Shown here piece by piece: positions 3,221 to 35,106 of a stretch of 41,943 bases of DNA. Below the pieces are notes generated by a model that was given only the letters and a program-made list of their open reading frames with translations, was not told the DNA's origin and made no database searches. The position numbers and the translations under genes were made by a program. The stretch's first letter is position 1, and each line of letters begins with the position of its first letter. The stretch comes from Octopus bimaculoides (lineage: Eukaryota). The stretch is taken from contig NC_068993.1 in NCBI RefSeq assembly GCF_001194135.2, positions 36,894,697-36,936,639 on the forward strand. Reading direction: 5' to 3'.

Positions 3221-4392
3221 CAGGGGTCACCAAACTCTTTTCACAGCGGGCCAGATAACTGAGAGAAAGGCGAGCGCGGGCTGCATAACCATTTTGTTCA
3301 ATACAATACAGTGAATATACGCAAAATAAAAACAACCAATATATTTATTTACCAAAAAGTTATCAAAGAAGATGACATTAGCAATAAGATAGTTATATCA
3401 CACCCAATGGGCACATATCCGAATTTCACAGACTAAATAGCAAAAAAAAAAAAAGTTTAGTGAGATTTGTGAAACTGGTGCTTAGCTTTTAAGATATCAA
3501 TACTTGCTTTGGAATTGCTGCATCCAACCAATAGAATTACATTCAAACATTCATCAGTCAACCTCGTTCGATGTGCTAACTTCAGATTACTTCAATTTTG
3601 AAAATGTTTGCTCACAGACAAAGATTGTTCCAAACACAGATGCCATACCAGAGGCAAATTTCTTCAAATTTGAAAACTCATTATCAGGTAAGCAGTGATA
3701 AAATTCTACAAGTATTCCTTCTCTGTGCTTCTCATTCAACAAGTCAATGAGCACCAACTGTAGTTCGACTGGCAGGTTATCAAAACCCAAACGCATTCTG
3801 GGACAGAAGAATGTCATTCTCAATTCTGCCGAGATCTGAAAATCTCACCAAAAAATACTTATTTAAGTCACGAATTATCTTCTTCAGAAACTCGAGGTTG
3901 GCATCTGTGATTCTAGCGCGAAACTCTTTGAGACACTGAAAATTAGAGAAGTTTCCTCCTTCCAGTTGTGCTTCAAATAATGATAGCTTTCTCTGAAATC
4001 TTTTGTTGATTCTGTAAAAATCATTATATTCTCCCCAAGTTCTTCTGTTCGCCATAACTCTGAGCTTGCTGAAAAGCTGATGCTTCCAAGCAAATCGGCT
4101 TTCTCAGGATACAAGTCATTTGCTGCTTCCATCATACACTTTTTGATGAAGTTGCCGTCGGTAAACGGTTTTCCTCGCTCTGCCATCTTATGCATTATTT
4201 TGTAACTTGTACGACTGACATATTCATTTTCAACAAACATTCTTGTAAAGAGAATGTTGAAACACGACGATGCAAGTTAAAACACGATCGCTGCAGGAAT
4301 GAACTCTCAATGCAGGTACTTACAAAGAAGGTACAGTGTGGCGGCGGACCAGATGAACTGACCTCACGGCCCGTAAGTTTGGTGACCGCCTG
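3221..4392 (-). mobile_element. Internally deleted hAT transposon (Charlie/Buster, GTF2IRD2-like transposase remnants)
   Basis: TIRs CAGGGGTCACCAAACT / AGTTTGGTGACCGCCTG; 8-bp TSD ctctagac / ctcaagac. Frameshifted ORFs contain KPFTDGNFIKKCM and FGTIFVCEQTFSKLK (hAT dimerisation domain); catalytic core and N-terminus are deleted. Confidence 0.9.
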
Positions 4393-7601: not shown

Positions 7602-7727
7602 ATGGCGGCGCCTATGTCTGCCAGTCTGCCGATAATCATAGACAAAAAAGTGAAGAAAAAACTTCAGCGATGTCGACATACTTTACGCAAGTTAGATAAT
7701 ATCAGTTTATCAAATGAGCAAACTAAT
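7602..7727 (+). CDS. ALKBH8: ALKBH8 coding exon 1 (MAAPMSASLPIIIDKKVKKKLQRCRHTLRKLDNISLSNEQTN; N-terminal basic helix)
   Basis: ATG at 7602, 42 codons, then GTAAGA donor at 7728 (phase 0). KKVKKKLQRCRHTLRKLDNI resembles the recalled human [20 protein letters not shown]. Joins in frame to exon 2. Confidence 0.8.
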
Positions 7728-11472: not shown

Positions 11473-11792
11473 CATCATCATCATCGTTTAACGTCCGCTT
11501 TCTATGCTAGCATGGGTTGGACAATTTGACTGAGGACTGGTGAAACCAGATGGCTACACCAGGCTCCAATCTGATTTGGCAGAGTTTCTACGGCTGGATG
11601 CCCTTCCTAACGCCAACCACTCAGAAAGTGTAGTGGGTGCTTTTACGTGTCACCTGCACAAAGGCCAGTCAGGCGGTACTGGCAACGGCCACACTCAGGA
11701 TGGTGTATTTTATGTGCCACCTGCACAAAAGCCAGTCCAGGGGCACTGGCAACGATCTCGCTCGAAAATCCTACGAAGGCCAGTCAGGCGGT
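11473..11792 (-). mobile_element. Young RTE-tail element (truncated LINE 3' UTR or SINE)
   Basis: catcatcatcgtttaacgtccgctttctatgctagcatgggttgg...ggatgcccttcctaacgccaacc; about 90% identical by eye to 12688-13046. Confidence 0.85.
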
Positions 11793-12687
11793 TTACAATA
11801 TACAGTATTCATAGTAATGATTTTGCACCTTGCTATAACACTAACAACTTTACAAACAGTTTTGTTTCATATTGCCTATTTGCTAATGATACTTCATTTA
11901 TATTCTCTTTTTGTTAATATACCTTCATCTCTATATTGTCTACTTGCTAATAGTATTTCGTCTATATTGTCTATTTGTCCTAGCTAATAATTGTTCTTTT
12001 CTTGGCATAGATCATATTTATTTGTGAAACTCCCAGATGTTTTCTTCATACTCTTCAGATATCTTCTTTGCAGTCCTGGTCTTTACTCTCATACTTGACT
12101 CCTGCTTCTTCAGGATGTAGCATCATGATGAAAAACCAGTAAATTCATCTGTTGGTACATTTCCCTTTTCTTCTAATTTCTTTGCCTTACACTATTATTA
12201 TCATTGTGGAGATTTTATAGCCCCATAGTTCGTTGATTGTGTATCCATGGTTTGTGACTTCCTCCAGTTCTTAATGATGTGCTTCTTTATGATGAAGTCC
12301 ACATTTTTTTCATTCTTCTGTTTTCTCATTTGGTGGTGATCTATACCATAGCTCAACTACCTAGTTGCTGTATTGTTTGACATATACAAAACTTGTAGCT
12401 TGTAATTATGCCTGTCTTCTCTGCATGTGTAGCATTGTAGAGGGGTTGTAAGTTAAATAACTAAACTGACAGGTAACAGATGGTGTCTAATTCAGAGGTA
12501 CTACTGCTGGCCTACAAAAGATGTGAAGCATCAGCGTTATTGATTCACCATAAATCAAATAAATGACATTCTGTTACCAGTGCCAGTGAGCCCTTGTAAA
12601 CAGCTACTAGTTACCATTAATTACAAAACTAATGAATATCGTAATCATAAATCCAAGATATGTTTAGTATGTGTGAATATAGATGTA

Positions 12688-13046
12688 CTGTGCGGGTGGC
12701 ACATGAGATGCACCATTTTGAGCGTGGCCGTTGCCAGTACCGCCTGACTGGCTCCCGTAGGATTTTCGAGCGAGATCGTTGCCAGTGCCCCTGGACTGGC
12801 TTGTGCGGGTGGCACATAAAAGACACCATTTCGAGCGTGGCCGTTTTCGTGCGGGTGACACGTAAAAGCACCCACTACACTCTCTGAGTGGTTGGCGTTA
12901 GGAAGGGCATCCAGCTGTAGAAACTTTGCCAAATCAGACTGGAGCCTGGTGTTGCCATCCGGTTTCACCAGTCCTCAGTCAAATCCTCCAACCCATGCTA
13001 GCATGGAAAGCGGACGTTAAACGATGATGATGATGATGATGATGAT
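12688..13046 (+). mobile_element. Young RTE-tail element, inverted relative to 11473-11792
   Basis: ggttggcgttaggaagggcatccagctgtag...ccaacccatgctagcatggaaagcggacgttaaacg(ATG)n. Confidence 0.85.
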
Positions 13047-15155: not shown

Positions 15156-16277
15156 TTGGGTTGCCTAAAAAGTCCTTTTGCTTTTTAAGTGAAAATAAGA
15201 CACAAGTTTTAAACGTAGAGTGATTTATTTAATCAATGATATAATTACCAATTGATTTCAAAATCTTCTGCTTTCATTGGCCAAGAGCTCTTCCAGGTGA
15301 ATTTCTACACCATCTTTAGAACTGAAAGTCTGTCTATTTAATGAATTTGAAGAGGCCAAAATAGGTAGAAATCTGAAGGCACAAAGTTGGGTGAATATGG
15401 AGAGTGAGGCAAAACTTCCCAACCAAGCCATAGTAACATTTTTTTGTGTCTGCAGAGAAGCCTGCAGTCTGGCATTGTCACGGTGAAAGACAGTGCCCTT
15501 GTAACTGAAAAGTTCTGGATGCTTCTCATTGATTACTGTGTTTAATTTGTGTAGCTGGTCACAGTACACATCTGAAGTGATGGTCCTGATCATAGGAAGA
15601 TGCTCATAAAAGGCCATGCCCTTCCAATCCCACCAAAGTCCTGCACTGGAGGTTGTTTGTGGTGGTTTACTGCACTTACCCATGATCATTTGTGCTTCAC
15701 GTTGTTATAATGACTCATTTGTCTTTTCTTGTCAACATTCTTTTCAAAAAAGGATAATTTTTGTTCATGTATCTGCTGCAAATTGCAGTTGGACATTCAT
15801 TGGGCCATGCTCTCCTCATTCAATTGATGTGTGACCCAAACATTGAGCCTGCTGGTGTAACCAAGTTGGTGCAGATAGTTTTTAGTACTTGATTAGGATA
15901 TTTGGAGAATATCTGCAATGATCCTTGTAAAATGGAGTAGGGTATGACTAACTCCTTCACTTTGTTGCTGTTAATCTCTCAGTTGGTCGGCTTCTTGAAT
16001 GGAAAAATTTCCTGATTAAAATCTTGAAAACCACTTCTGGCACATATGTTCCATAACAGCATTCTGTACACAACACATATCTTCCTGCATGTTTCCATTG
16101 CTTTCTGATGTGTTGATAATGTTCATTTTGATTTTCCATTTTCAGGATGATCTTAAGCACACAAAATACAACCTGTCTCATTGCAAGTTCATGTCAAACT
16201 ATGTTAGAGTGTCAGGTATCTAGCAAGTATGCATATGTAAAGGAAGAAAATGTAAATAAACTTTTGGGTCAACCCAA
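15156..16277 (-). mobile_element. Near full-length degenerate mariner (DD34D) element
   Basis: TIRs TTGGGTTGCCTAAAAAG / CTTTTGGGTCAACCCAA flanked by TA (15154-15155, 16278-16279). Broken ORFs contain MENQNEH, WWDWKG...YE, FHRDNAR and LPHSPYSPNFVPSDFYLF; many frameshifts. Confidence 0.92.
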
Positions 16278-18932: not shown

Positions 18933-19158
18933 ATTCTTTGTGTATTCAATGGTGGACTGGACACTGGTGTGAGCAAGGAAGAAATAGAAGAGGCTTTCTG
19001 TGAAGATGTCCGTGCTGAAGAAATTATCATGCTGCCTCAAAGACCTTATGCCTTTATATGTTACCTTTCTACTGAAGATGCAGTACAGGCCGCCAATAAA
19101 TTGAACGGTACTAAACTAAGTAATGGAAACAACATCTATATTTCTTTTTTAAAGACAA
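18933..19158 (+). CDS. ALKBH8: ALKBH8 coding exon 2, RRM domain (ILCVFNGGLDTGVSKEEIEEAF...PQRPYAFICY...LNG...IYISFLKT)
   Basis: Pyrimidine tract + TAG acceptor at 18930-18932; GTAAGT donor at 19159 (phase 1). NGGL, P-x-x-PYAF and LNG motifs match the ALKBH8 RRM (human VANGGLGNG...PPNKPYSF...LNGK). Confidence 0.92.
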
Positions 19159-22120: not shown

Positions 22121-22246
22121 TTCCATCGTGCTTAGTTCCATCCACAGACCTACCACCAGGTTTGATTCTTCTGAAAGATTTCATCAGTGAAGATTACGAA
22201 ACCCAGCTGATCAGTGCTATAGAATGGGCTGACTGTGATAATCCAA
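22121..22246 (+). CDS. ALKBH8: ALKBH8 coding exon 3 (IPSCLVPSTDLPPGLILLKDFISEDYETQLISAIEWADCDNP)
   Basis: 30-T tract then TAG acceptor; GTAAGG donor at 22247; phase 1-1, 126 nt. LPPGL...FISE...L...W is the start of the AlkB domain. Confidence 0.92.
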
Positions 22247-22736: not shown

Positions 22737-22937
22737 CCCAAACAACTTTGAAACACCGAAAAACAAAGCACTATGGATACGAGTTCTTGTACAGCACAAA
22801 CAATGTTGATCCAAGCACTCCTCTTCCTTGTGGAATCCCTCCAGTATGTGATAAATTAATTTCAAAGGTTATGCAACATGGATTAATTAACCACTGTCCA
22901 GACCAGTTGACTGTCAACCAATACTTACCCGGACAAG
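22737..22937 (+). CDS. ALKBH8: ALKBH8 coding exon 4 (TQTTLKHRKTKHYGYEFLYSTNNVD...PDQLTVNQYLPGQ)
   Basis: CAG acceptor at 22734-22736; GTATGT donor at 22938; phase 1-1, 201 nt. LKHR-x-x-KHYGYEF-x-Y and PDQLTVNQY-x-PGQG are ALKBH8 signatures. Confidence 0.95.
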
Positions 22938-24918: not shown

Positions 24919-24989
24919 GTATACCACCACATGTAGATACTCCTTCAGCTTTTGAAGATGGAATCGTTTCCTTAAGTCTTGGTTCTATG
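24919..24989 (+). CDS. ALKBH8: ALKBH8 coding exon 5 (GIPPHVDTPSAFEDGIVSLSLGSM; HxD iron ligands)
   Basis: Not in the ORF track; read by hand. TAG acceptor at 24916-24918, GTGAGA donor at 24990, 71 nt, phase 1-0. HVD at 24930-24938. Confidence 0.95.
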
Positions 24990-25329
24990 GTGAGATTTCT
25001 AACTATACAGAATTTTATTTTCTAAATATTATTACAAATTTTTTGTTTATTGTGTGTGTACGGTTAGAGGTCTGTAAATGTTCGTTTGCTGAAATGGCTA
25101 CAACTACTACTATTTATTATGATTGTTGCATATTGTCCAGTCACGGAATTCAGTTTCTGTAATTAATTGATCTGTATTATGTCTTTGAAGTATTTTAATA
25201 TTTAATAATTCTTCTTCGATGGAATGTGATGAAATTTTTTTTAATATTTCAAGGGAGAGAACTCTGGATTTATATTTTACAAGTTTTTTCCCTTAATTAA
25301 AGAAAATGAAAACTTCTGCGAACATATTT

Positions 25330-25927
25330 TATCTTTTGTTCCAGTCAATTCGACTTCACCCATGCTGGAGCACAGCCTTGAAGAATTTTTAGTAGAATCG
25401 AACCCAGTATTTGTTTTTTGTTAAACCTTGTATTTATTCTGTCGGTCTGTTTTGGCGAACCGTTTAGTTACAGGGACGTAAACATCCAAAACCAGTTGTC
25501 AAGCAGTAGTGACACACACACACACACACATATTTATACACGTTTCGATGTTTGCGTAGGTCTGACAGAATTTGTCGAGGCACTTTTCAATGGCTGGATG
25601 CCAAGCAAGGTAATATTTCCCCATGACCAGACAATCTCTTGTAGAATATTGGAAACAAAAGACATATGCTTGTGCTCATTTACAACCCCCACTTTGTGAA
25701 AAACTAAGAGATACAAGCACACGCATATGTATATACAAACAGGAAAAATCTATTTCTCTGCAGATTAAAAAAATGCCGAACACCATGCAAGCATGGCTGT
25801 GTGGTAAGGAGCTTGTTTCTCAACCACATGGGTCCAGGTTCAGTCCCATTGTGTGGCACCTTGGGCAAATGTCTTCTACTATAGACTTGGCTTGACCAAA
25901 TCCTTGTGTGTGGATTTGGTAGATGGA
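25330..25927. mobile_element. Type A SINE tail (- strand, 25330-25510) and CORE SINE head (+ strand, 25790-25927)
   Basis: Direct match to family modules; the head runs into the N gap. Confidence 0.7.
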
Positions 25928-26025
25928 NNNNNNNNNNNNNNNNNNNNNNNNNNNNNNNNNNNNNNNNNNNNNNNNNNNNNNNNNNNNNNNNNNNNNNNNN
26001 NNNNNNNNNNNNNNNNNNNNNNNNN

Positions 26026-26059
<34 letters not shown>

Positions 26060-26061
<2 letters not shown>

Positions 26062-26165
26062 TGGAGCCTGGTGTTGCCATCCGGTTTCACCAGTCCTCAG
26101 TCAAATTGTCCAACCCATGCTAGCATGGAAAGCGGACGTTAAACGATGATGATGATGATGATGAT
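26060..26165 (+). mobile_element. RTE-type 3' tail fragment
   Basis: ccagtcctcagtcaaattgtccaacccatgctagcatggaaagcggacgttaaacg(ATG)n. Confidence 0.85.
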
Positions 26166-26239
26166 GTATATCAATTCTGTCAGCTGACTGTTTAGTATAA
26201 TAATCTTCTAATATAATAATGAGTGTAGCGTTTTTATAT

Positions 26240-27715
26240 CATTATCATCATTTAACGTCCGTTTTCCCTACTGGCATGGGTTGGACGGTTTGACTGTGGT
26301 CTGGAGAGCCAGCGACTGCACCAGGCTCCAATCTGATCTGGCAGTGTTTCTACAGCTGGATGCCCTTCCAAATGCCAACCACTCCAAGAGTGTAGTGGGT
26401 GCTTTTTACGTACGACTGGCGCAAGAGCCAGTCAGGCGGGCCTGGCATCAATCATGTTCGGATAGTGCTTTTTATGTGCCACCAGCATGGGAGCCAGTCA
26501 GGGGGTACTAGCATCGGCCATATTCGGATTGTGCTTTTTACATACCACCAGCACAGGGGCCAGTCAGGCGGTCCTGGCATCAATCACATTTGGATAGTGC
26601 TTTTTACATGCCACTGGCACAGGAGCCAGTCAGGGGTTACTGGCATCGGCCATGTGCGGATAGTGCTTTTTATGTGTCACCAGCACGGGGGCCTGTCAGG
26701 GGGCACTGACCACAGCTGCAATTTTGGTTTTACTTGACTCTACAGGTCTTCTCAAGCATATCATATCACCCAATACATCAAGGGTACTCTTAAATGGGCT
26801 GGACATGCAACACTGGCATCGGCCATGGCTGTGATCTCACTTTAGTTCCAGGTCTTCTCAATCACAGCATAATTCCAAAGGTCTTGGCCTCCTGTCATTG
26901 TCTCTGTGAGGTCCAATGTTTGAAGGTCATGCTTCACCATCTCATTCCAAGTCTTCCTGTGTCTACTTCTTCCACAGGTTCCTTCTACTGTTAGTGAGTG
27001 GCACTTCTTCACACAGTTGTCCTCATCCATACGTAACACATGACCATACCAGCGCAGTCGTCTGTCTTGCACACCACATTTGATGCTTCTTATGTCCAAC
27101 TTTTCTCTCAGGGTGCTTACACTGTGTTGTGTATGCACACGGACATACATCCAGCAGATCATATTAGCTTCATTTCTTACTGACATTACGCATGTCCTCA
27201 GCATTCACGGCCCATGTTTCACTGCCGTGTAGCATGGCAGTTCAAACACATGCATCATACAGTCTGCCTTTCATCCTGAGTGAGAGGCCCTTAGTTGGCA
27301 GCAGAGGTAGGATCTCTTTGAACTTTGTCCAGGCTATTCTTACTCTAGCCGCTACACTTTCAGAGCAACCCCACCCCACTACAAACTTGGTCACTTAAGT
27401 AGTGGAAGCTATTAACTACTTCTCGTTTTTTTCCCCTGGCATGTGATGGAATCTGTTTTCTGTACATCTTCAGTGTTTATTGCACCTGTGCATCTGCCAC
27501 ACACAAAAACTATCTTTCTGGTTAACCTTCCTTTGATATTGCTGCCCCTTTTATGTGTCCATAGCTTACACCGGGTACATCGTATGGAGTTTTTACCCAC
27601 GCCTTTTCTACAGATCGAGCAGGGCCATCTACCTGGAGAGGTTTGTGATTTGTCAGCCTTCCTACTTACTAAGACTTTGATTTTTGCTAGGTTAACCCTA
27701 AAACCCTCCAATTCT
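26240..27715 (-). mobile_element. 5'-truncated RTE-clade LINE: PHD-like Cys module, RT C-terminus, repeat-containing 3' UTR, (GAT)n tail
   Basis: RVNLAKIKVL, CSIC...CTRC...H...CGRC, LHGSETW and RLRWYGHVLRM...GR...RKTW motifs across frameshifted ORFs, contiguous with the array, the GGAAGGGCATCC block and the tail. Confidence 0.88.
26399..26710 (+). repeat. 66-bp tandem array (~4.7 units) with A/B alternation
   Basis: Units start at 26399, 26465, 26531, 26597 and 26663. Confidence 0.9.
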
Positions 27716-28039
27716 AGACCTTATATTTGTATGTATATATATATATATTTGTCCAGAATCACGCTGGATGCGGAGGAGGAGAGAGAAAATAGTAATTCAG
27801 TGAAGGAGAAGTAGTGAGAGTAATAGCCCTGACTGAGAGGGAGTGAGAGAAAGTAATAGCAGTATGGAAAAGGAAGGGGTGAACAAAAATCAGTTTTTCA
27901 ACTCTGTGAGTATATGTGTGTATGTGTACAAGAGAAGTATGTGAATGTTTGTATGTATGATTATTATGTACCTTATTTATATAAAAACTACTACAATTAG
28001 CCGTCATTATTGATGGTACATGGTCAGCTGGTAATAATA

Positions 28040-28330
28040 AAAATCACCATTATCAATTAATGTCTGCTTTCCATGCTGGCATGGGTTAGACGGTATGACT
28101 GGAACTGGTAAGCTACAGGGCTGCACCAGGTTCCAGTCTGATTTGGCATGGTTTCTATNNNNNNNNNNGCACCAGGTTCCAGTCTGATTTGGCATGGTTT
28201 CTATGGCTGGATGCCCTTCCTAATGCCAACCACTCTGAGAGTGTAGTGGGTGCCTTTTACATGACACCAGCAAGCACAGCATATCACCAAAGGTCTCGGT
28301 CACTTGTCATTGTCTACATGAGGCTCAATA
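28040..28330 (-). mobile_element. Short 5'-truncated RTE copy
   Basis: Tail and GGATGCCCTTCCTAA block joined to ccaaaggtctcggtcacttgtcattgtct, which is the RTE ORF end. Confidence 0.7.
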
Positions 28331-28457
28331 TTATATATGTATATGTATGTATATATATACATACATATATATATAATTTCACACAAACACACACATACAC
28401 ATCTGGCAAAAATATTGATACACACTGTCAATAGAATTGTCAGAAATGTGCCTCAGC

Positions 28458-28682
28458 GAGCTGGCAGAATCATTAGCACACCGGGCGAAATGCTTAGTGG
28501 TATTTCGTCTGCCGTTACATTCTGAGTTCAAATTCCGCTGAGGTCGACTTTGCCTTTCATCCTTTCGGGGTCGATAAATTAAGTACCAGTTATACTCTGG
28601 GGTCGATGTAATCGACTTAATCCCTTTGTCTGTCCTTGTTTGTCCCCTCTATGTTTAGCCCCTTGCGGGCAATAAAGAAACG
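28458..28682 (+). mobile_element. Very young Nin/Deu-like SINE with a perfect 16-bp TSD
   Basis: TSD agaaatgtgcctcagc at 28442-28457 and 28683-28698; roughly 93% identical by eye to 20744-20974. Confidence 0.92.
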
Positions 28683-28902
28683 AGAAATGTGCCTCAGCAA
28701 AACCTGGGAACAAATCTTCAGTGACTTATTTGAGTTTTAATCGAAATGAGAAATGAGTAAAAAACAAATTATACTTTGTTTTAGAATTGATATTAATCCC
28801 ATTAATTCTTGTTGTAGAGATGTAAATGGGATGACTTTGTTGTTGCTTTTGTCAAAGAATCTTGGCAAATGGTTCATTTCCATTCTTTGTTCTTTATTTC
28901 AG

Positions 28903-29128
28903 GTTGTCATGGAGTTTCATCATTCTGATGGTCATCACAGGAGTGTAATCCTGCCACAAAGAAGTCTTCTAGTAATGACCGGAGAATCTAGATATATCTG
29001 GTCCCATGGGATCACTCCAAGAAAGTCAGACATTGTACCCCTTCCAGACAGTTCGATGACTCTGGTCAAAAGAGAAACAAGAATATCATTTACGTTTCGC
29101 AAACTAGCTTCGGAAAATTCTATGCATA
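28903..29128 (+). CDS. ALKBH8: ALKBH8 coding exon 6 ([10 protein letters not shown]...[27 protein letters not shown]...[20 protein letters not shown]); reads through to TAG at 29155-29157 if the donor is not used
   Basis: TTTCAG acceptor at 28902. LP[19 protein letters not shown] (third Fe ligand) and R-x-SFTFR (2OG arginines) are present. GTAAGC donor at 29129 (phase 1). The 3' boundary is uncertain. Confidence 0.9.
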
Positions 29129-29269
29129 GTAAGCAGAAACACTTCTTGTTGTTTTAGTAAATATTTGGATCTTAATGAACACTTCGTTATTAAGGTAGTT
29201 GCCTGTCATTGTTGTTGTTATTGTCAGCCCCAATTAAGAAAAACTACAATTAAAAGTGTTCCAACTGCA

Positions 29270-29830
29270 GCTGTCCTGAGGACTGGTGGACCAGGTGGCT
29301 ACACCAGGCTGCAATCTGATTTGGCAGAGTTTCTACAGCTGGATGCCCTTCCTAACGCCAACCACTCAGAGAGTGTAGTGGGTGCTTTTACGTGCCACCG
29401 GCATGAAGGCCAGTCAGGCGGTACTGGCAACGGCCACGGTCGAAATGGTGTATTTTATGTGCCACCTGCACAGGAGCCCCATTATTGTATATCTAACACT
29501 ACATTCTCTATCTTGATTTTTCAAAACACTCATTATCATCATCAACATTTAATGTTTGCTTTCCATGCTGGCATGGGTTTTATGGCTTGACAGGAACTGG
29601 CAAGGCCAGAAGCAGCACCAGGTTCCATAGTCTGTTTTGGATTGGTCTTTACAGCTTGAGGCTTTTCCTAATGCCAACCACTTTACAGAATGTCCTGGGT
29701 GCTTTTTACATGGCACCATCACCAGTACTTTTTACATAGCACCAGCACCAGTGCTATTTATGTGGCACCAGCACCAGTGCTATTTATGTGGCACCAGCAC
29801 TCACACCAATACTTTTATGTGGCACCTTGG
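29270..29830 (-). mobile_element. Two RTE-tail elements (29270-29480; 29530-29830, the latter with a ~26-bp array at 29699-29826)
   Basis: ggatgcccttcctaacgccaacc blocks and gtgctatttatgtggcaccagcacca units. Confidence 0.75.
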
Positions 29831-30669: not shown

Positions 30670-31080
30670 ACATGCATTTCAGTGGATATGTTCAGTGTTT
30701 ATTGCCCTTGTACATCTGCCACACACAAAAACTATCTTCTTGGTTAACCTTCCTTTGATATTGCTGCCCCTTTTATATGTCCATAGCTTACACTGGGTAC
30801 ATCGTATGGAGTTTCTACCCATGCCTTTTCTACAGATTGAGCAGGGCCATCTACCTGAAGAGGTTTGTGATTTGTCAGCCTTCCTACTTACTAAGATTGT
30901 TTTTTTTTTTGCACATTTATTATGTAAAGTGGTTGGCACTAAAAAGGGCATCAGCTGTAGAAACCTTGCCAAAATAGACAATTGAAGACTGGTGCAGCTC
31001 TCTGGCTTGCCAGCTACTATCAATCTCTCCAACCCATTCCAGCATGGAAAATGAACGTCAAATGATGATGGTGATGATGT
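30670..31080. mobile_element. RTE PHD-like fragment (- strand, 30670-30895) plus RTE-tail element (+ strand, 30925-31080)
   Basis: SRKADKSQTSSGRWPCSICRKG...CTQC...CGRC is nearly identical to the 27412-27711 copy. Confidence 0.8.
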
Positions 31081-31144
31081 ATGTGCACACTTGTCTCTTA
31101 TTTGTGTTGTTTTTGTTACATATACACATTCACTCATTAATACA

Positions 31145-31530
31145 CACACACATGACTGTGTGGTTAAGAAATTTCCTTCCAAACCACATGGTTTGGGGCT
31201 CAGTACCACTGCATAGCACTTTCAGCAAATGTCTTCTACTATAACACTGGGCTAACCAAAGCCCTAAAACCTTGTGAGTGAATTTGGTAGATGGAAACTG
31301 AAAGAAGTTCATTGTATGTGTGCGTTTTGTCTCCTTGTTGTGATTGTGTGATTATTGGAAATTAATGACATTCTACAAAAACATGTCTGGCCATGTGGAA
31401 ATATTACCTTGCTTGGAAACAGGTGAGGGTTGGAAACAGGAAGGGCATCTGACTGTTAGAATCCTACTTTAGTAAACTCTATCTGACCCATGCAAGCACA
31501 GAATAGAGGACTTTAAAATGAGGATGATAT
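31145..31530 (+). mobile_element. Type B composite SINE: tRNA/CORE head + GGAAGGGCATC block + RTE-like tail
   Basis: The head matches type A. After the TG stretch it switches to aaaacatgtctggccatg...ggaaacaggtgagggttgg...aggaagggcatc...gacccatgcaagc...(GAT). The same 3' half occurs at 39110-39375. Confidence 0.7.
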
Positions 31531-33037: not shown

Positions 33038-33724
33038 TCCTTAACATATGTCTAAGTCATGTAACTTAACTCAAAAATACAATGTAGCATGAGAAAACAT
33101 TTCTTCAAAAAGTTTATTAGCTTAAGTCTGTTTTAATAAAAGATTTCTACATATTTGCAAATGTATTTTATTTGATTTTCCTTTTCAGTATTGAGTTTTA
33201 GGTGTGNNNNNNNNNNNNNNNNNNNNNNNNNNNNNNNNNNNNNNNNNNNNNNNNNNNNNNNNNNNNNNNNNNNNNNNNNNNNNNNNNNNNNNNNNNNNNN
33301 NNNNNNNNNNNNNNNNNNNNNNNNNNNNNNNNNNNNNNNNNNNNNNNNNNNNNNNNNNNNNNNNNNNNNNNNNNNNNNNNNNNNNNNNNNNNNNNNNNNN
33401 NNNNNNNNNNNNNNNNNNNNNNNNNNNNNNNNNNNNNNNNNNNNNNNNNNNNNNNNNNNNNNNNNNNNNNNNNNNNNNNNNNNNNNNNNNNNNNNNNNNN
33501 NNNNNNNNNNNNNNNNNNNNNNNNNNNNNNNNNNNNNNNNNNNNNNNNNNNNNNNNNNNNNNNNNNNNNNNNNNNNNNNNNNNNNNNNNNNNNNNNNNNN
33601 NNNNNNNNNNNNNNNNNNNNNNNNNNNNNNNNNNNNNNNNNNNNNNNNNNNNNNNNNNNNNNNNNNNNNNNNNNNNNNNNNNNNNNNNNNNNNNNNNNNA
33701 CACACACACACACACACACACACG

Positions 33725-33962: not shown

Positions 33963-34005
33963 CCTCTGAAACTCTGATTCCTGCCAAAACCGCATCTGAA
34001 AATGG
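33963..34005 (+). CDS. Candidate further ALKBH8 mini-exon (T)SETLIPAKTASENG
   Basis: tttatctttccag acceptor, GTATGT donor, open in the phase-1 frame required by exon 6. No recognisable homology. Confidence 0.3.
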
Positions 34006-34199
34006 GTATGTTGTTTTTGTTTTTGTATATTTTTTAAGAAGTTTTTATTAATTATTTTACATTTTTTGGATTGTATTCTTATTCTTTGTAGGTTGCATTA
34101 GTCTTACATTTGCATAGATTTTCTTCTTGGAGAGCACCAGACTAGATGCTTTATACCATTTTGTTTTGCATCTTTGGTTTTGTGTCTAAAATCCTTCTA

Positions 34200-35106
34200 T
34201 TCATACCTCCAGTACTGATTTAAGTTGCAATTAACACCACGAATGAACACAAGACATTGTGACGTACTAGAGAGATCAGTAGACTCATCCATTGCAAGAG
34301 AATACCACAAAAAGTTCTTAGCTTTCTCATGTATCTGTATATTCTCTCCAAGTTCTTCTATTCTCTGCACAACTGAACTTGCTGAAAGGCTGATACAGCC
34401 AAACATGTTAGCTTTTTCAGGACACAAGTCATTTGCTGCTTCCATCATGCACTCTTTTATAAAGTTTCCATCAGTAAATGGTTTTTCTCACTCTGCCAAC
34501 TTACTCCCTATTTTGTAACTTACATGAATAATACATTCATTTTCAACAAACTTTTCCGTAAAGAAATTCTTTTGAGATTCCAAACTGTTTCATAGATTCA
34601 AATTTCTCGAACCACAACTTTCCAGAATGTTTAGAATGTGTTGAGAGATGTTTTGCTTCATAGTGACGATGAATATTGTACTCTTTCATAACAGCAACAC
34701 TTTTGTTGCATATCCAGCAACTAGCTTTCTGGTCGTTTGTTTCCACAAAGAAGTACTTTTCTTCCCATTCCTTATTGAAAATGCGACATTCATCATCAAC
34801 CTTTCTATTCTTAGTAGCCATAACGATGGGTGAAAAAAAAACAAAAGCAGTCTTAGGCCTCGGCGTCAGATATTCTCGTTTTCATTGAAATCACTAATAA
34901 CTAACTAGCCCGAGGCACACGTGATGTACTGTAGTAATTATTATGGAGCGTGAAATACATAGCGTGTGACGTGACTGACTCAGTTTACATACAACATGCG
35001 TAATCTAAGAACTGTAAGAAGCAGTGTAAAAGCATGTTTATTTTTTTCAGCATCCAATGGTGGGCCGGACAAATTGATGTTGCGGGCTGTAGTTTGGTGA
35101 CCCATG
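34200..35106 (-). mobile_element. One-ended hAT (Charlie/Buster) element with the transposase N-terminus
   Basis: TIR agtttggtgacccatg ends at 35106. ORFs MATKNRKVDDECRIFNKEWEEKYFF...CWICNK...VMKEYNIHRHYEAKH (BED-like finger) and YSLAMDESTD...FIRGV. The left end is missing. Confidence 0.88.

Follow-up and report, generated by a model that had tools for sequence, protein, structure and literature searches.

A stretch of 41,943 nt from the Octopus bimaculoides genome (G000:C13:36894697-36936639, here called the window) carries, on the + strand, coding sequence (CDS) exons 1 to 7 of 11, the 5′ two-thirds, of ALKBH8. ALKBH8 is a bifunctional tRNA wobble-uridine enzyme built from an RNA recognition motif (RRM), an AlkB-type Fe(II)/2-oxoglutarate (2OG) hydroxylase and a Trm9-type methyltransferase, and it converts 5-carboxymethyluridine (cm5U) to 5-methoxycarbonylmethyluridine (mcm5U) and then mcm5U to (S)-5-methoxycarbonylhydroxymethyluridine, (S)-mchm5U, on tRNA-Gly(UCC). 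All splice sites in the 11-exon model are GT-AG and the translation is exactly XP_014783678.1 (657 aa), annotated as ‘alkylated DNA repair protein alkB homolog 8 isoform X1 [Octopus bimaculoides]’. The octopus protein does not have the CCCH structural Zn(II) site, here termed ZnF, of other ALKBH8 enzymes. We consider it likely that the gene encodes a ZnF-less, single-copy and working ALKBH8 whose four zinc ligands were all lost once, on the mollusc stem.

In human ALKBH8, His242 is reportedly the fourth zinc ligand, next to three cysteines. Read directly, the octopus codons at 24930-24944 in exon 5 are CAT-GTA-GAT-ACT-CCT (H-V-D-T-P), with the Pro codon CCT at the position of His242. The end of exon 6 reads TTT ACG TTT CGC AAA CTA GCT TCG GAA AAT TCT ATG CAT A, to 29128, followed by gtaagc, and TCT-ATG-CAT (29119-29127) encodes S-M-H at the positions of C341 to C343. 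The micro-exon that follows occupies the place of the vertebrate segment C349-D-S-Q and encodes no Cys, and the entire octopus linker of 45 residues from FTFRK to HVHQVYNE, at the methyltransferase, is cysteine-free, so C349 also has no counterpart. A first-pass annotation of the window, made from the sequence alone, had read the Pro and S-M-H codons correctly and its substitutions H242P, C341S and C343H hold, with the same state in three other octopods. The micro-exon was not seen in that annotation and its list of lost ligands was incomplete: four zinc ligands are missing in octopus ALKBH8, not three. Vertebrate isoforms part ways directly after the CxC, and the first base of the next codon stays the same (S/T in mammals, A/G in a goby). 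Such a pattern would be expected if vertebrates had a phase-1 intron where octopus has one, a position inferred from protein isoforms and apparently shared by human ALKBH8. Given the shared intron position, the equivalence of S323 with C341 and of H325 with C343 is well founded, and the micro-exon is the piece that carries C349 elsewhere. C341, C343 and C349 are documented as the zinc-binding cysteines of human ALKBH8 (PMC4051686). Across 281 sequences, a His at position 242 and the three cysteines co-occur perfectly, a pattern that on its own supports His242 as a zinc ligand.

Two further features of this region were noted. Octopods have a His-rich loop, FHHSDGHH, at 28918-28938 (FHHPDGHH in O. 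vulgaris), where other molluscs have FRHPDGRH and human ALKBH8 has FKHPDGIA. Several vertebrate isoforms, from teleosts (P0042, P0163, P0273) and mammals (P0135, P0137), diverge after the CxC and so do not contain C349, a possible hint that natural ALKBH8 isoforms without a zinc site exist in vertebrates.

Table 1. ALKBH8 coding exons and intron 5 of O. bimaculoides, in positions of the window; exons 8-11 lie past the window end and are given in continued coordinates
Feature	Position	Strand	Basis
CDS exon 1 (Met1 to N42)	7602-7727	+	tblastn of P0001; exact-translation model
CDS exon 2, RRM domain	18933-19158	+	exact-translation model; aligns to RRM of human ALKBH8 in 3THP
CDS exon 3, AlkB domain start (LPPGLILL...)	22121-22246	+	exact-translation model
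CDS exon 4, AlkB domain (LKHRKTKHYGYEF...NQYLPGQ)	22737-22937	+	exact-translation model
CDS exon 5: H231 (24930-24932), D233 (24936-24938), Pro235 (24942-24944)	24919-24989	+	codons read directly; alignment
Intron 5, with both flagged assembly gaps and no coding sequence	24990-28902	+	gene model
CDS exon 6: H285 (29005-29007), R310 (29080-29082), R316 (29098-29100), Ser323 (29119-29121), His325 (29125-29127)	28903-29128	+	codons; alignment
CDS exon 7, 43-nt micro-exon (T)SETLIPAKTASEN(G)	33963-34005	+	tblastn; exact-translation model
CDS exons 8-11	47078-47150, 49731-49886, 53792-53941, 55537-56112	+	

The micro-exon (TSETLIPAKTASENG) begins 264 nt after a 493-N gap (33207-33699), is easily overlooked, and bridges exons 6 and 8. 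Exon 6 closes with a GTAAGC donor in phase 1, and the next conspicuous exon (KLDPSALEIPETRAANLEVTHVHQ), at 47078, opens in phase 2. These two exons cannot be joined in frame because their phases differ, and a direct join was ruled out. A weak GTTGTT donor at 29147 was also considered, and was dropped as the 43-nt exon reproduces the NCBI protein exactly. For the window, the practical outcome is a verified ALKBH8 gene model that includes the 43-nt exon and a coding sequence untouched by the flagged gaps. The annotated isoform X2 (P0002) skips the exon at 49731-49886, which encodes the S-adenosylmethionine (SAM)-binding motif DIGCGNGKY; the predicted product should retain the RRM-AlkB part and presumably has no methyltransferase activity.

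With two gaps in the span between the zinc-site codons, about 3.6 kb of N in introns 6 and 7 downstream, and an exon join that the first-pass annotation had left incomplete, an assembly error, a gap-hidden exon or a wrong model might be thought to conceal a normal zinc site. Both flagged gaps (25928-26025, 98 N; 28159-28168, 10 N) are, however, in intron 5 and touch no codon. Exon 5 ends ...LSLGSM before its gt, exon 6 starts VVMEFHH after its ag, and the junction LSLGSM/VVMEFHH aligns without an indel to human LSLGSE/IVMDFKH and Argonauta LSLGSL/VVMEFHH, so that no coding sequence is hidden in these gaps. The 10-N gap has an identical 36 bp (gcaccaggttccagtctgatttggcatggtttctat) on each side, within a repeat resembling a short interspersed nuclear element (SINE; 28123-28204), and is probably an unmerged overlap of contig ends rather than missing sequence. 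The gene model agrees exactly with the NCBI protein. When the readable introns were scanned for a cryptic exon with a CxC..CDSQ-like frame, only (TG)n microsatellite translations were found. The Pro, the S..H and the Cys-free linker are also present in the independent assemblies of O. vulgaris, O. sinensis and Argonauta hians, which rules out sequencing error, and about 40 other mollusc proteins agree. An artefact is, on this evidence, scarcely credible, and the loss is, as the first-pass annotation had proposed, genuine and inherited.

Nor does the genome have a second, canonical ALKBH8 of which this gene could be a decaying copy. Searches of the whole 2.34-Gb assembly, queried first with the human protein and next with that of octopus, revealed no second ALKBH8 locus. 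One candidate for a decayed copy of exon 6 (C13:36941505-36941858) proved to be exon 8, beyond which the alignment was spuriously extended. The only other AlkB-like match in these searches was a 272-codon open reading frame (ORF) at G000:C25:33411721-33412539 (L013:1722-2540), with an AlkB-family domain near structures of Caenorhabditis elegans NMAD-1, an ALKBH4-type enzyme that carries the PDB label DNA N6-methyladenine demethylase. This ORF matches NMAD-1 (E 1.5e-37) far better than ALKBH8 (E 4e-8); it is therefore not an ALKBH8 paralogue and was rejected as such.

Three database searches provided 286 ALKBH8 sequences. The molluscs sampled include four octopod species, a cephalopod-like transcript, many gastropods and bivalves and the chiton Liolophura; the zinc-bearing animals include a sponge, two sea anemones, annelids, a brachiopod, two nemerteans, chelicerates, a centipede, many insects and, among deuterostomes, echinoderms, hemichordates, amphioxus and vertebrates. 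A His follows HxDT in none of 46 mollusc and all 235 non-mollusc sequences, and the CxC..C motif (CxCx4-7C) is present in none of 45 mollusc versus 217 of 221 non-mollusc sequences. The four exceptions keep the first two cysteines, as CxC in three and as CxxC in P0219, and the three with CxC (P0042, P0163, P0273) appear to be isoform variants. Among the ~1000 columns of an alignment of 41 species, only six separate molluscs from the other animals, namely H242, C341, C343 and C349 and the adjoining D350 and S351 (conserved in ≥85% outside and kept in ≤15% inside molluscs), a pattern that takes the loss of the ligands beyond chance. The cross-mollusc comparison that had been suggested as a check shows that the loss extends well beyond octopods, and non-mollusc invertebrates do keep the site. 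The lineage-specific removal claimed in the first-pass annotation is accordingly upheld as lineage-specific, with the lineage redefined as the whole of Mollusca, the chiton included, and not the octopods or cephalopods.

A maximum-likelihood tree calculated without the six columns groups the molluscs as one clade (SH-aLRT 97; SH-aLRT 99 with all columns) and requires one change of state, which fits a single change in the zinc site on the mollusc stem. The change is a loss, as cnidarians and the sponge keep the site and a ZnF has been published in plants and Cryptosporidium (PMC4051686). A recent loss confined to octopods or cephalopods would be in keeping with the find having been made in octopus and with the exact S..H after FTFRKLAS, which occurs in octopods only. 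It is nevertheless very improbable, as gastropods, bivalves and Liolophura also have neither His242 nor any of the motif cysteines, the one change lies at the base of the molluscs, and the tree gives no sign that the non-cephalopod sequences are paralogues. Among the residues that replace His242, Pro occurs most often, in cephalopods, the chiton and many gastropods and bivalves, and is probably the ancestral mollusc state. It did not become fixed: heterobranchs, oysters, venerids and limpets have other residues (T, G, R, V, I, C, L) at position 235. The old C341, C343 and C349 positions are variable or deleted across molluscs. Searches of the available literature library returned nothing relevant on ALKBH8 in molluscs, octopus or oyster and no report of ZnF absence in any animal phylum, so the phylum-wide loss appears to be unreported; the gene and protein were already annotated.

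Apart from the zinc site, octopus ALKBH8 has every sequence feature of the family for which it was examined. Human H238, D240, H292, R328 and R334 correspond to octopus H231, D233 and H285, which bind Fe, and R310 and R316, which bind 2OG. All five are invariant in a 27-species alignment and unchanged in all 21 molluscs aligned, and the human numbering and the retention of these ligands had been given correctly in the first-pass annotation. The AlkB-type signature (HxD...H, Rx5R) is complete, Pfam lists PF13532 for the protein (P0001) and the match to the human structure 3THP has an E value of 6e-77. For the RRM, exon 2 can be aligned with that of 3THP and with 2CQ2; Pfam assigns PF00076 to most of the mollusc orthologues, though not to P0001 itself. 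In human ALKBH8, the N-terminal RRM is needed for activity, which is abolished by its removal (PMC4051686). Exons 9-11, outside the window, match Trm9 (5CM2, E 2.7e-37) and encode the motif DIGCGNGKY. The best matches are all ALKBH8, the tree groups the sequences by phyla as expected and there is a single genomic locus, in agreement with orthology. Since the active Tetrahymena enzyme has no ZnF, we do not treat the ZnF as defining ALKBH8; the octopus protein, with its zinc site absent, is filed as a ZnF-less variant rather than as a canonical member.

Loss of a site whose conservation otherwise spans plants, apicomplexans and animals (PMC4051686) could be one part of a wider decay, with the mollusc AlkB domain catalytically retired and retained only to bind RNA or to serve the methyltransferase as a scaffold, and the literature search found no data on mollusc tRNA modification. 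Several observations oppose this. AlkB-core identity to the cnidarian Actinia, a sea anemone, is 50-61% for molluscs (60.7% for octopus) and 47-60% for zinc-bearing bilaterians, and the identities of the methyltransferase domain follow the same pattern; conservation of the core thus equals that of zinc-bearing lineages, with no sign of relaxation. The five Fe/2OG ligands are invariant across molluscs, whereas decay would be expected to strike them in some of the 46 sequences, and outside the zinc module no column distinguishes molluscs. By these comparisons, the rest of the mollusc AlkB domain is under ordinary constraint, and its retirement from catalysis is distinctly improbable.

Known ALKBH8 systems indicate how such an enzyme could function. 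Human ALKBH8 (ABH8; 3THP, 3THT) has the same order of RRM, AlkB domain, linker and Trm9 domain, identical Fe/2OG ligands and an AlkB core 50-60% identical. It differs in having the CCCH site (H242, C341, C343, C349), where the octopus residues are P, S and H and the third cysteine has no counterpart, and in an 11-residue insertion, SLKSGIITSDV, before the last strand that is not present in octopus; the alignment of octopus to 3THP ends at FTFRK. An experimental parallel is the human triple mutant C341A/C343A/C349A (Zdzalik et al. 2014, PMC4051686), which, like the mollusc proteins, combines an RRM and an intact AlkB core with the absence of zinc-binding cysteines, and in which mcm5U hydroxylation in vitro, to (S)-mchm5U, is normal. 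This engineered protein still has His242 and the remainder of the ZnF peptide, whereas the mollusc change arose in nature, extends to the His, has lasted throughout the phylum and has left a peptide diverged past recognition. The Tetrahymena thermophila ALKBH8, an AlkB domain only, and the bacterial ALKBH8-like AlkBs also have no ZnF, and the Tetrahymena enzyme is active, hydroxylating mcm5U (PMC4051686). Unlike molluscs, these forms also have no RRM or methyltransferase, and in the published view they predate the gain of the RRM and ZnF, whereas the mollusc loss is secondary. Arabidopsis and Cryptosporidium parvum have the same hydroxylase module with, unlike octopus, the ZnF retained (RRM/AlkB/ZnF), which shows the ZnF to be ancient in eukaryotes (PMC4051686); in plants, unlike octopus, the Trm9 methyltransferase is encoded by a separate gene.

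As published, the ZnF is credited with raising overall stability and is dispensable in vitro (PMC4051686), and a phylum-wide loss agrees with what the mutant data would predict. The first-pass annotation had suggested that zinc loss could change stability, substrate range or coupling to the methyltransferase; the part of this that concerns activity is weakened, as the human triple mutant stays active and only stability is attributed to the ZnF (PMC4051686). The zinc module has been removed as a unit from a full animal-type ALKBH8, by the tree on the mollusc stem. On the reading that we favour, a working ZnF-less enzyme, the mollusc protein, judged from its conserved residues, would still make mcm5U and hydroxylate it to (S)-mchm5U. 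In the human structure, zinc pins the C-terminal segment to the strand beside the Fe ligands; in molluscs, the segment after FTFRK may instead be a flexible tether that replaces this clasp to the strand after the HxD motif. Any cost of losing the zinc would then be in protein stability rather than in catalysis, and there is probably little catalytic effect.

The clasp might alternatively have been replaced, either by Pro235 stiffening the strand or, in octopods, by a His-based metal site formed by His325 and the FHHSDGHH loop. The frequency of Pro at the old His242 position, the His-rich octopod loop and the His at the C343 position are compatible with this, and no features other than the loop and His325 point to a possible substitute metal site. 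The former Cys positions are, however, variable or deleted, His325 and the loop are confined to octopods and position 235 itself varies, and we regard a replacement as quite unlikely. It is also unlikely, though conceivable, that the stem-mollusc loss was non-neutral, either altering the coupling of the hydroxylase to tRNA binding or to the methyltransferase, or removing a thiol/Zn site that redox stress or Cu/Cd could damage, with octopods perhaps having added a His-based site. If so, molluscs would differ measurably from other animals in the balance or regulation of mcm5U and (S)-mchm5U.

Several points weigh against a working enzyme that lost its zinc site once on the mollusc stem. The evidence for the activity and metal content of mollusc ALKBH8 is sequence conservation, and that for His242 as a ligand is its co-occurrence with the cysteines. 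Six of the 46 mollusc sequences are transcript assemblies assigned by similarity rank, of which only P0004 was placed in the tree. Aplacophorans, scaphopods, monoplacophorans, Nautilus and several other lophotrochozoan phyla lie outside the sample, so that ‘all molluscs’ and ‘only molluscs’ hold for the sample. An alternative exon may conceivably be present inside the N gaps of introns 6 and 7, where a 2,599-N gap (L011:1-2599, continued 41944-44542) opens the part of intron 7 past the window.

The zinc site of ALKBH8 is described as fixed from plants and apicomplexans to mammals, yet its purpose is uncertain. A phylum without it is therefore a natural experiment on a conserved metal site, and the four-residue signature is a clean molecular marker for the molluscs sampled. 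The loss is old and mollusc-wide and the catalytic core is seemingly intact, which makes it a modest evolutionary curiosity, and extension to a whole phylum makes the octopus window itself less surprising.

The window also contains many repeats and fragments of mobile elements. A mariner-type transposase fragment (15258-15704, -), in intron 1 of ALKBH8, matches Mos1 transposase and SETMAR (E 2e-5). A transposon-like ORF (KPFTDGNFIK.CMMEAANDL.PEKA...) is present in two copies (3884-4276, -; 34197-34487, -). The second adjoins an ORF at 34543-34881 (-) with a C..C...H..H pattern that resembles a BED zinc finger and lies antisense beside the micro-exon; a PDB search with this ORF gave nothing significant. 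A retroelement-like ORF also occurs twice, in intron 5 (27412-27720, -) and intron 6 (30679-31221, -), the copies sharing RWPCSICRKG.G.NSIRCT.CKLWT.KRGSNIKGRLT.KIVFVCGRCT. A short interspersed repeat, with the translation ...RLQSDLA.FLQLDALPNANHSESVVGAF..., has many copies (11534-11917; 12645-12974, -; 26212-26511; 28099-28434; 29108-29590), one of which starts within the 3′ end of exon 6. Assembly gaps tend to fall in or beside these short interspersed repeats and microsatellites.

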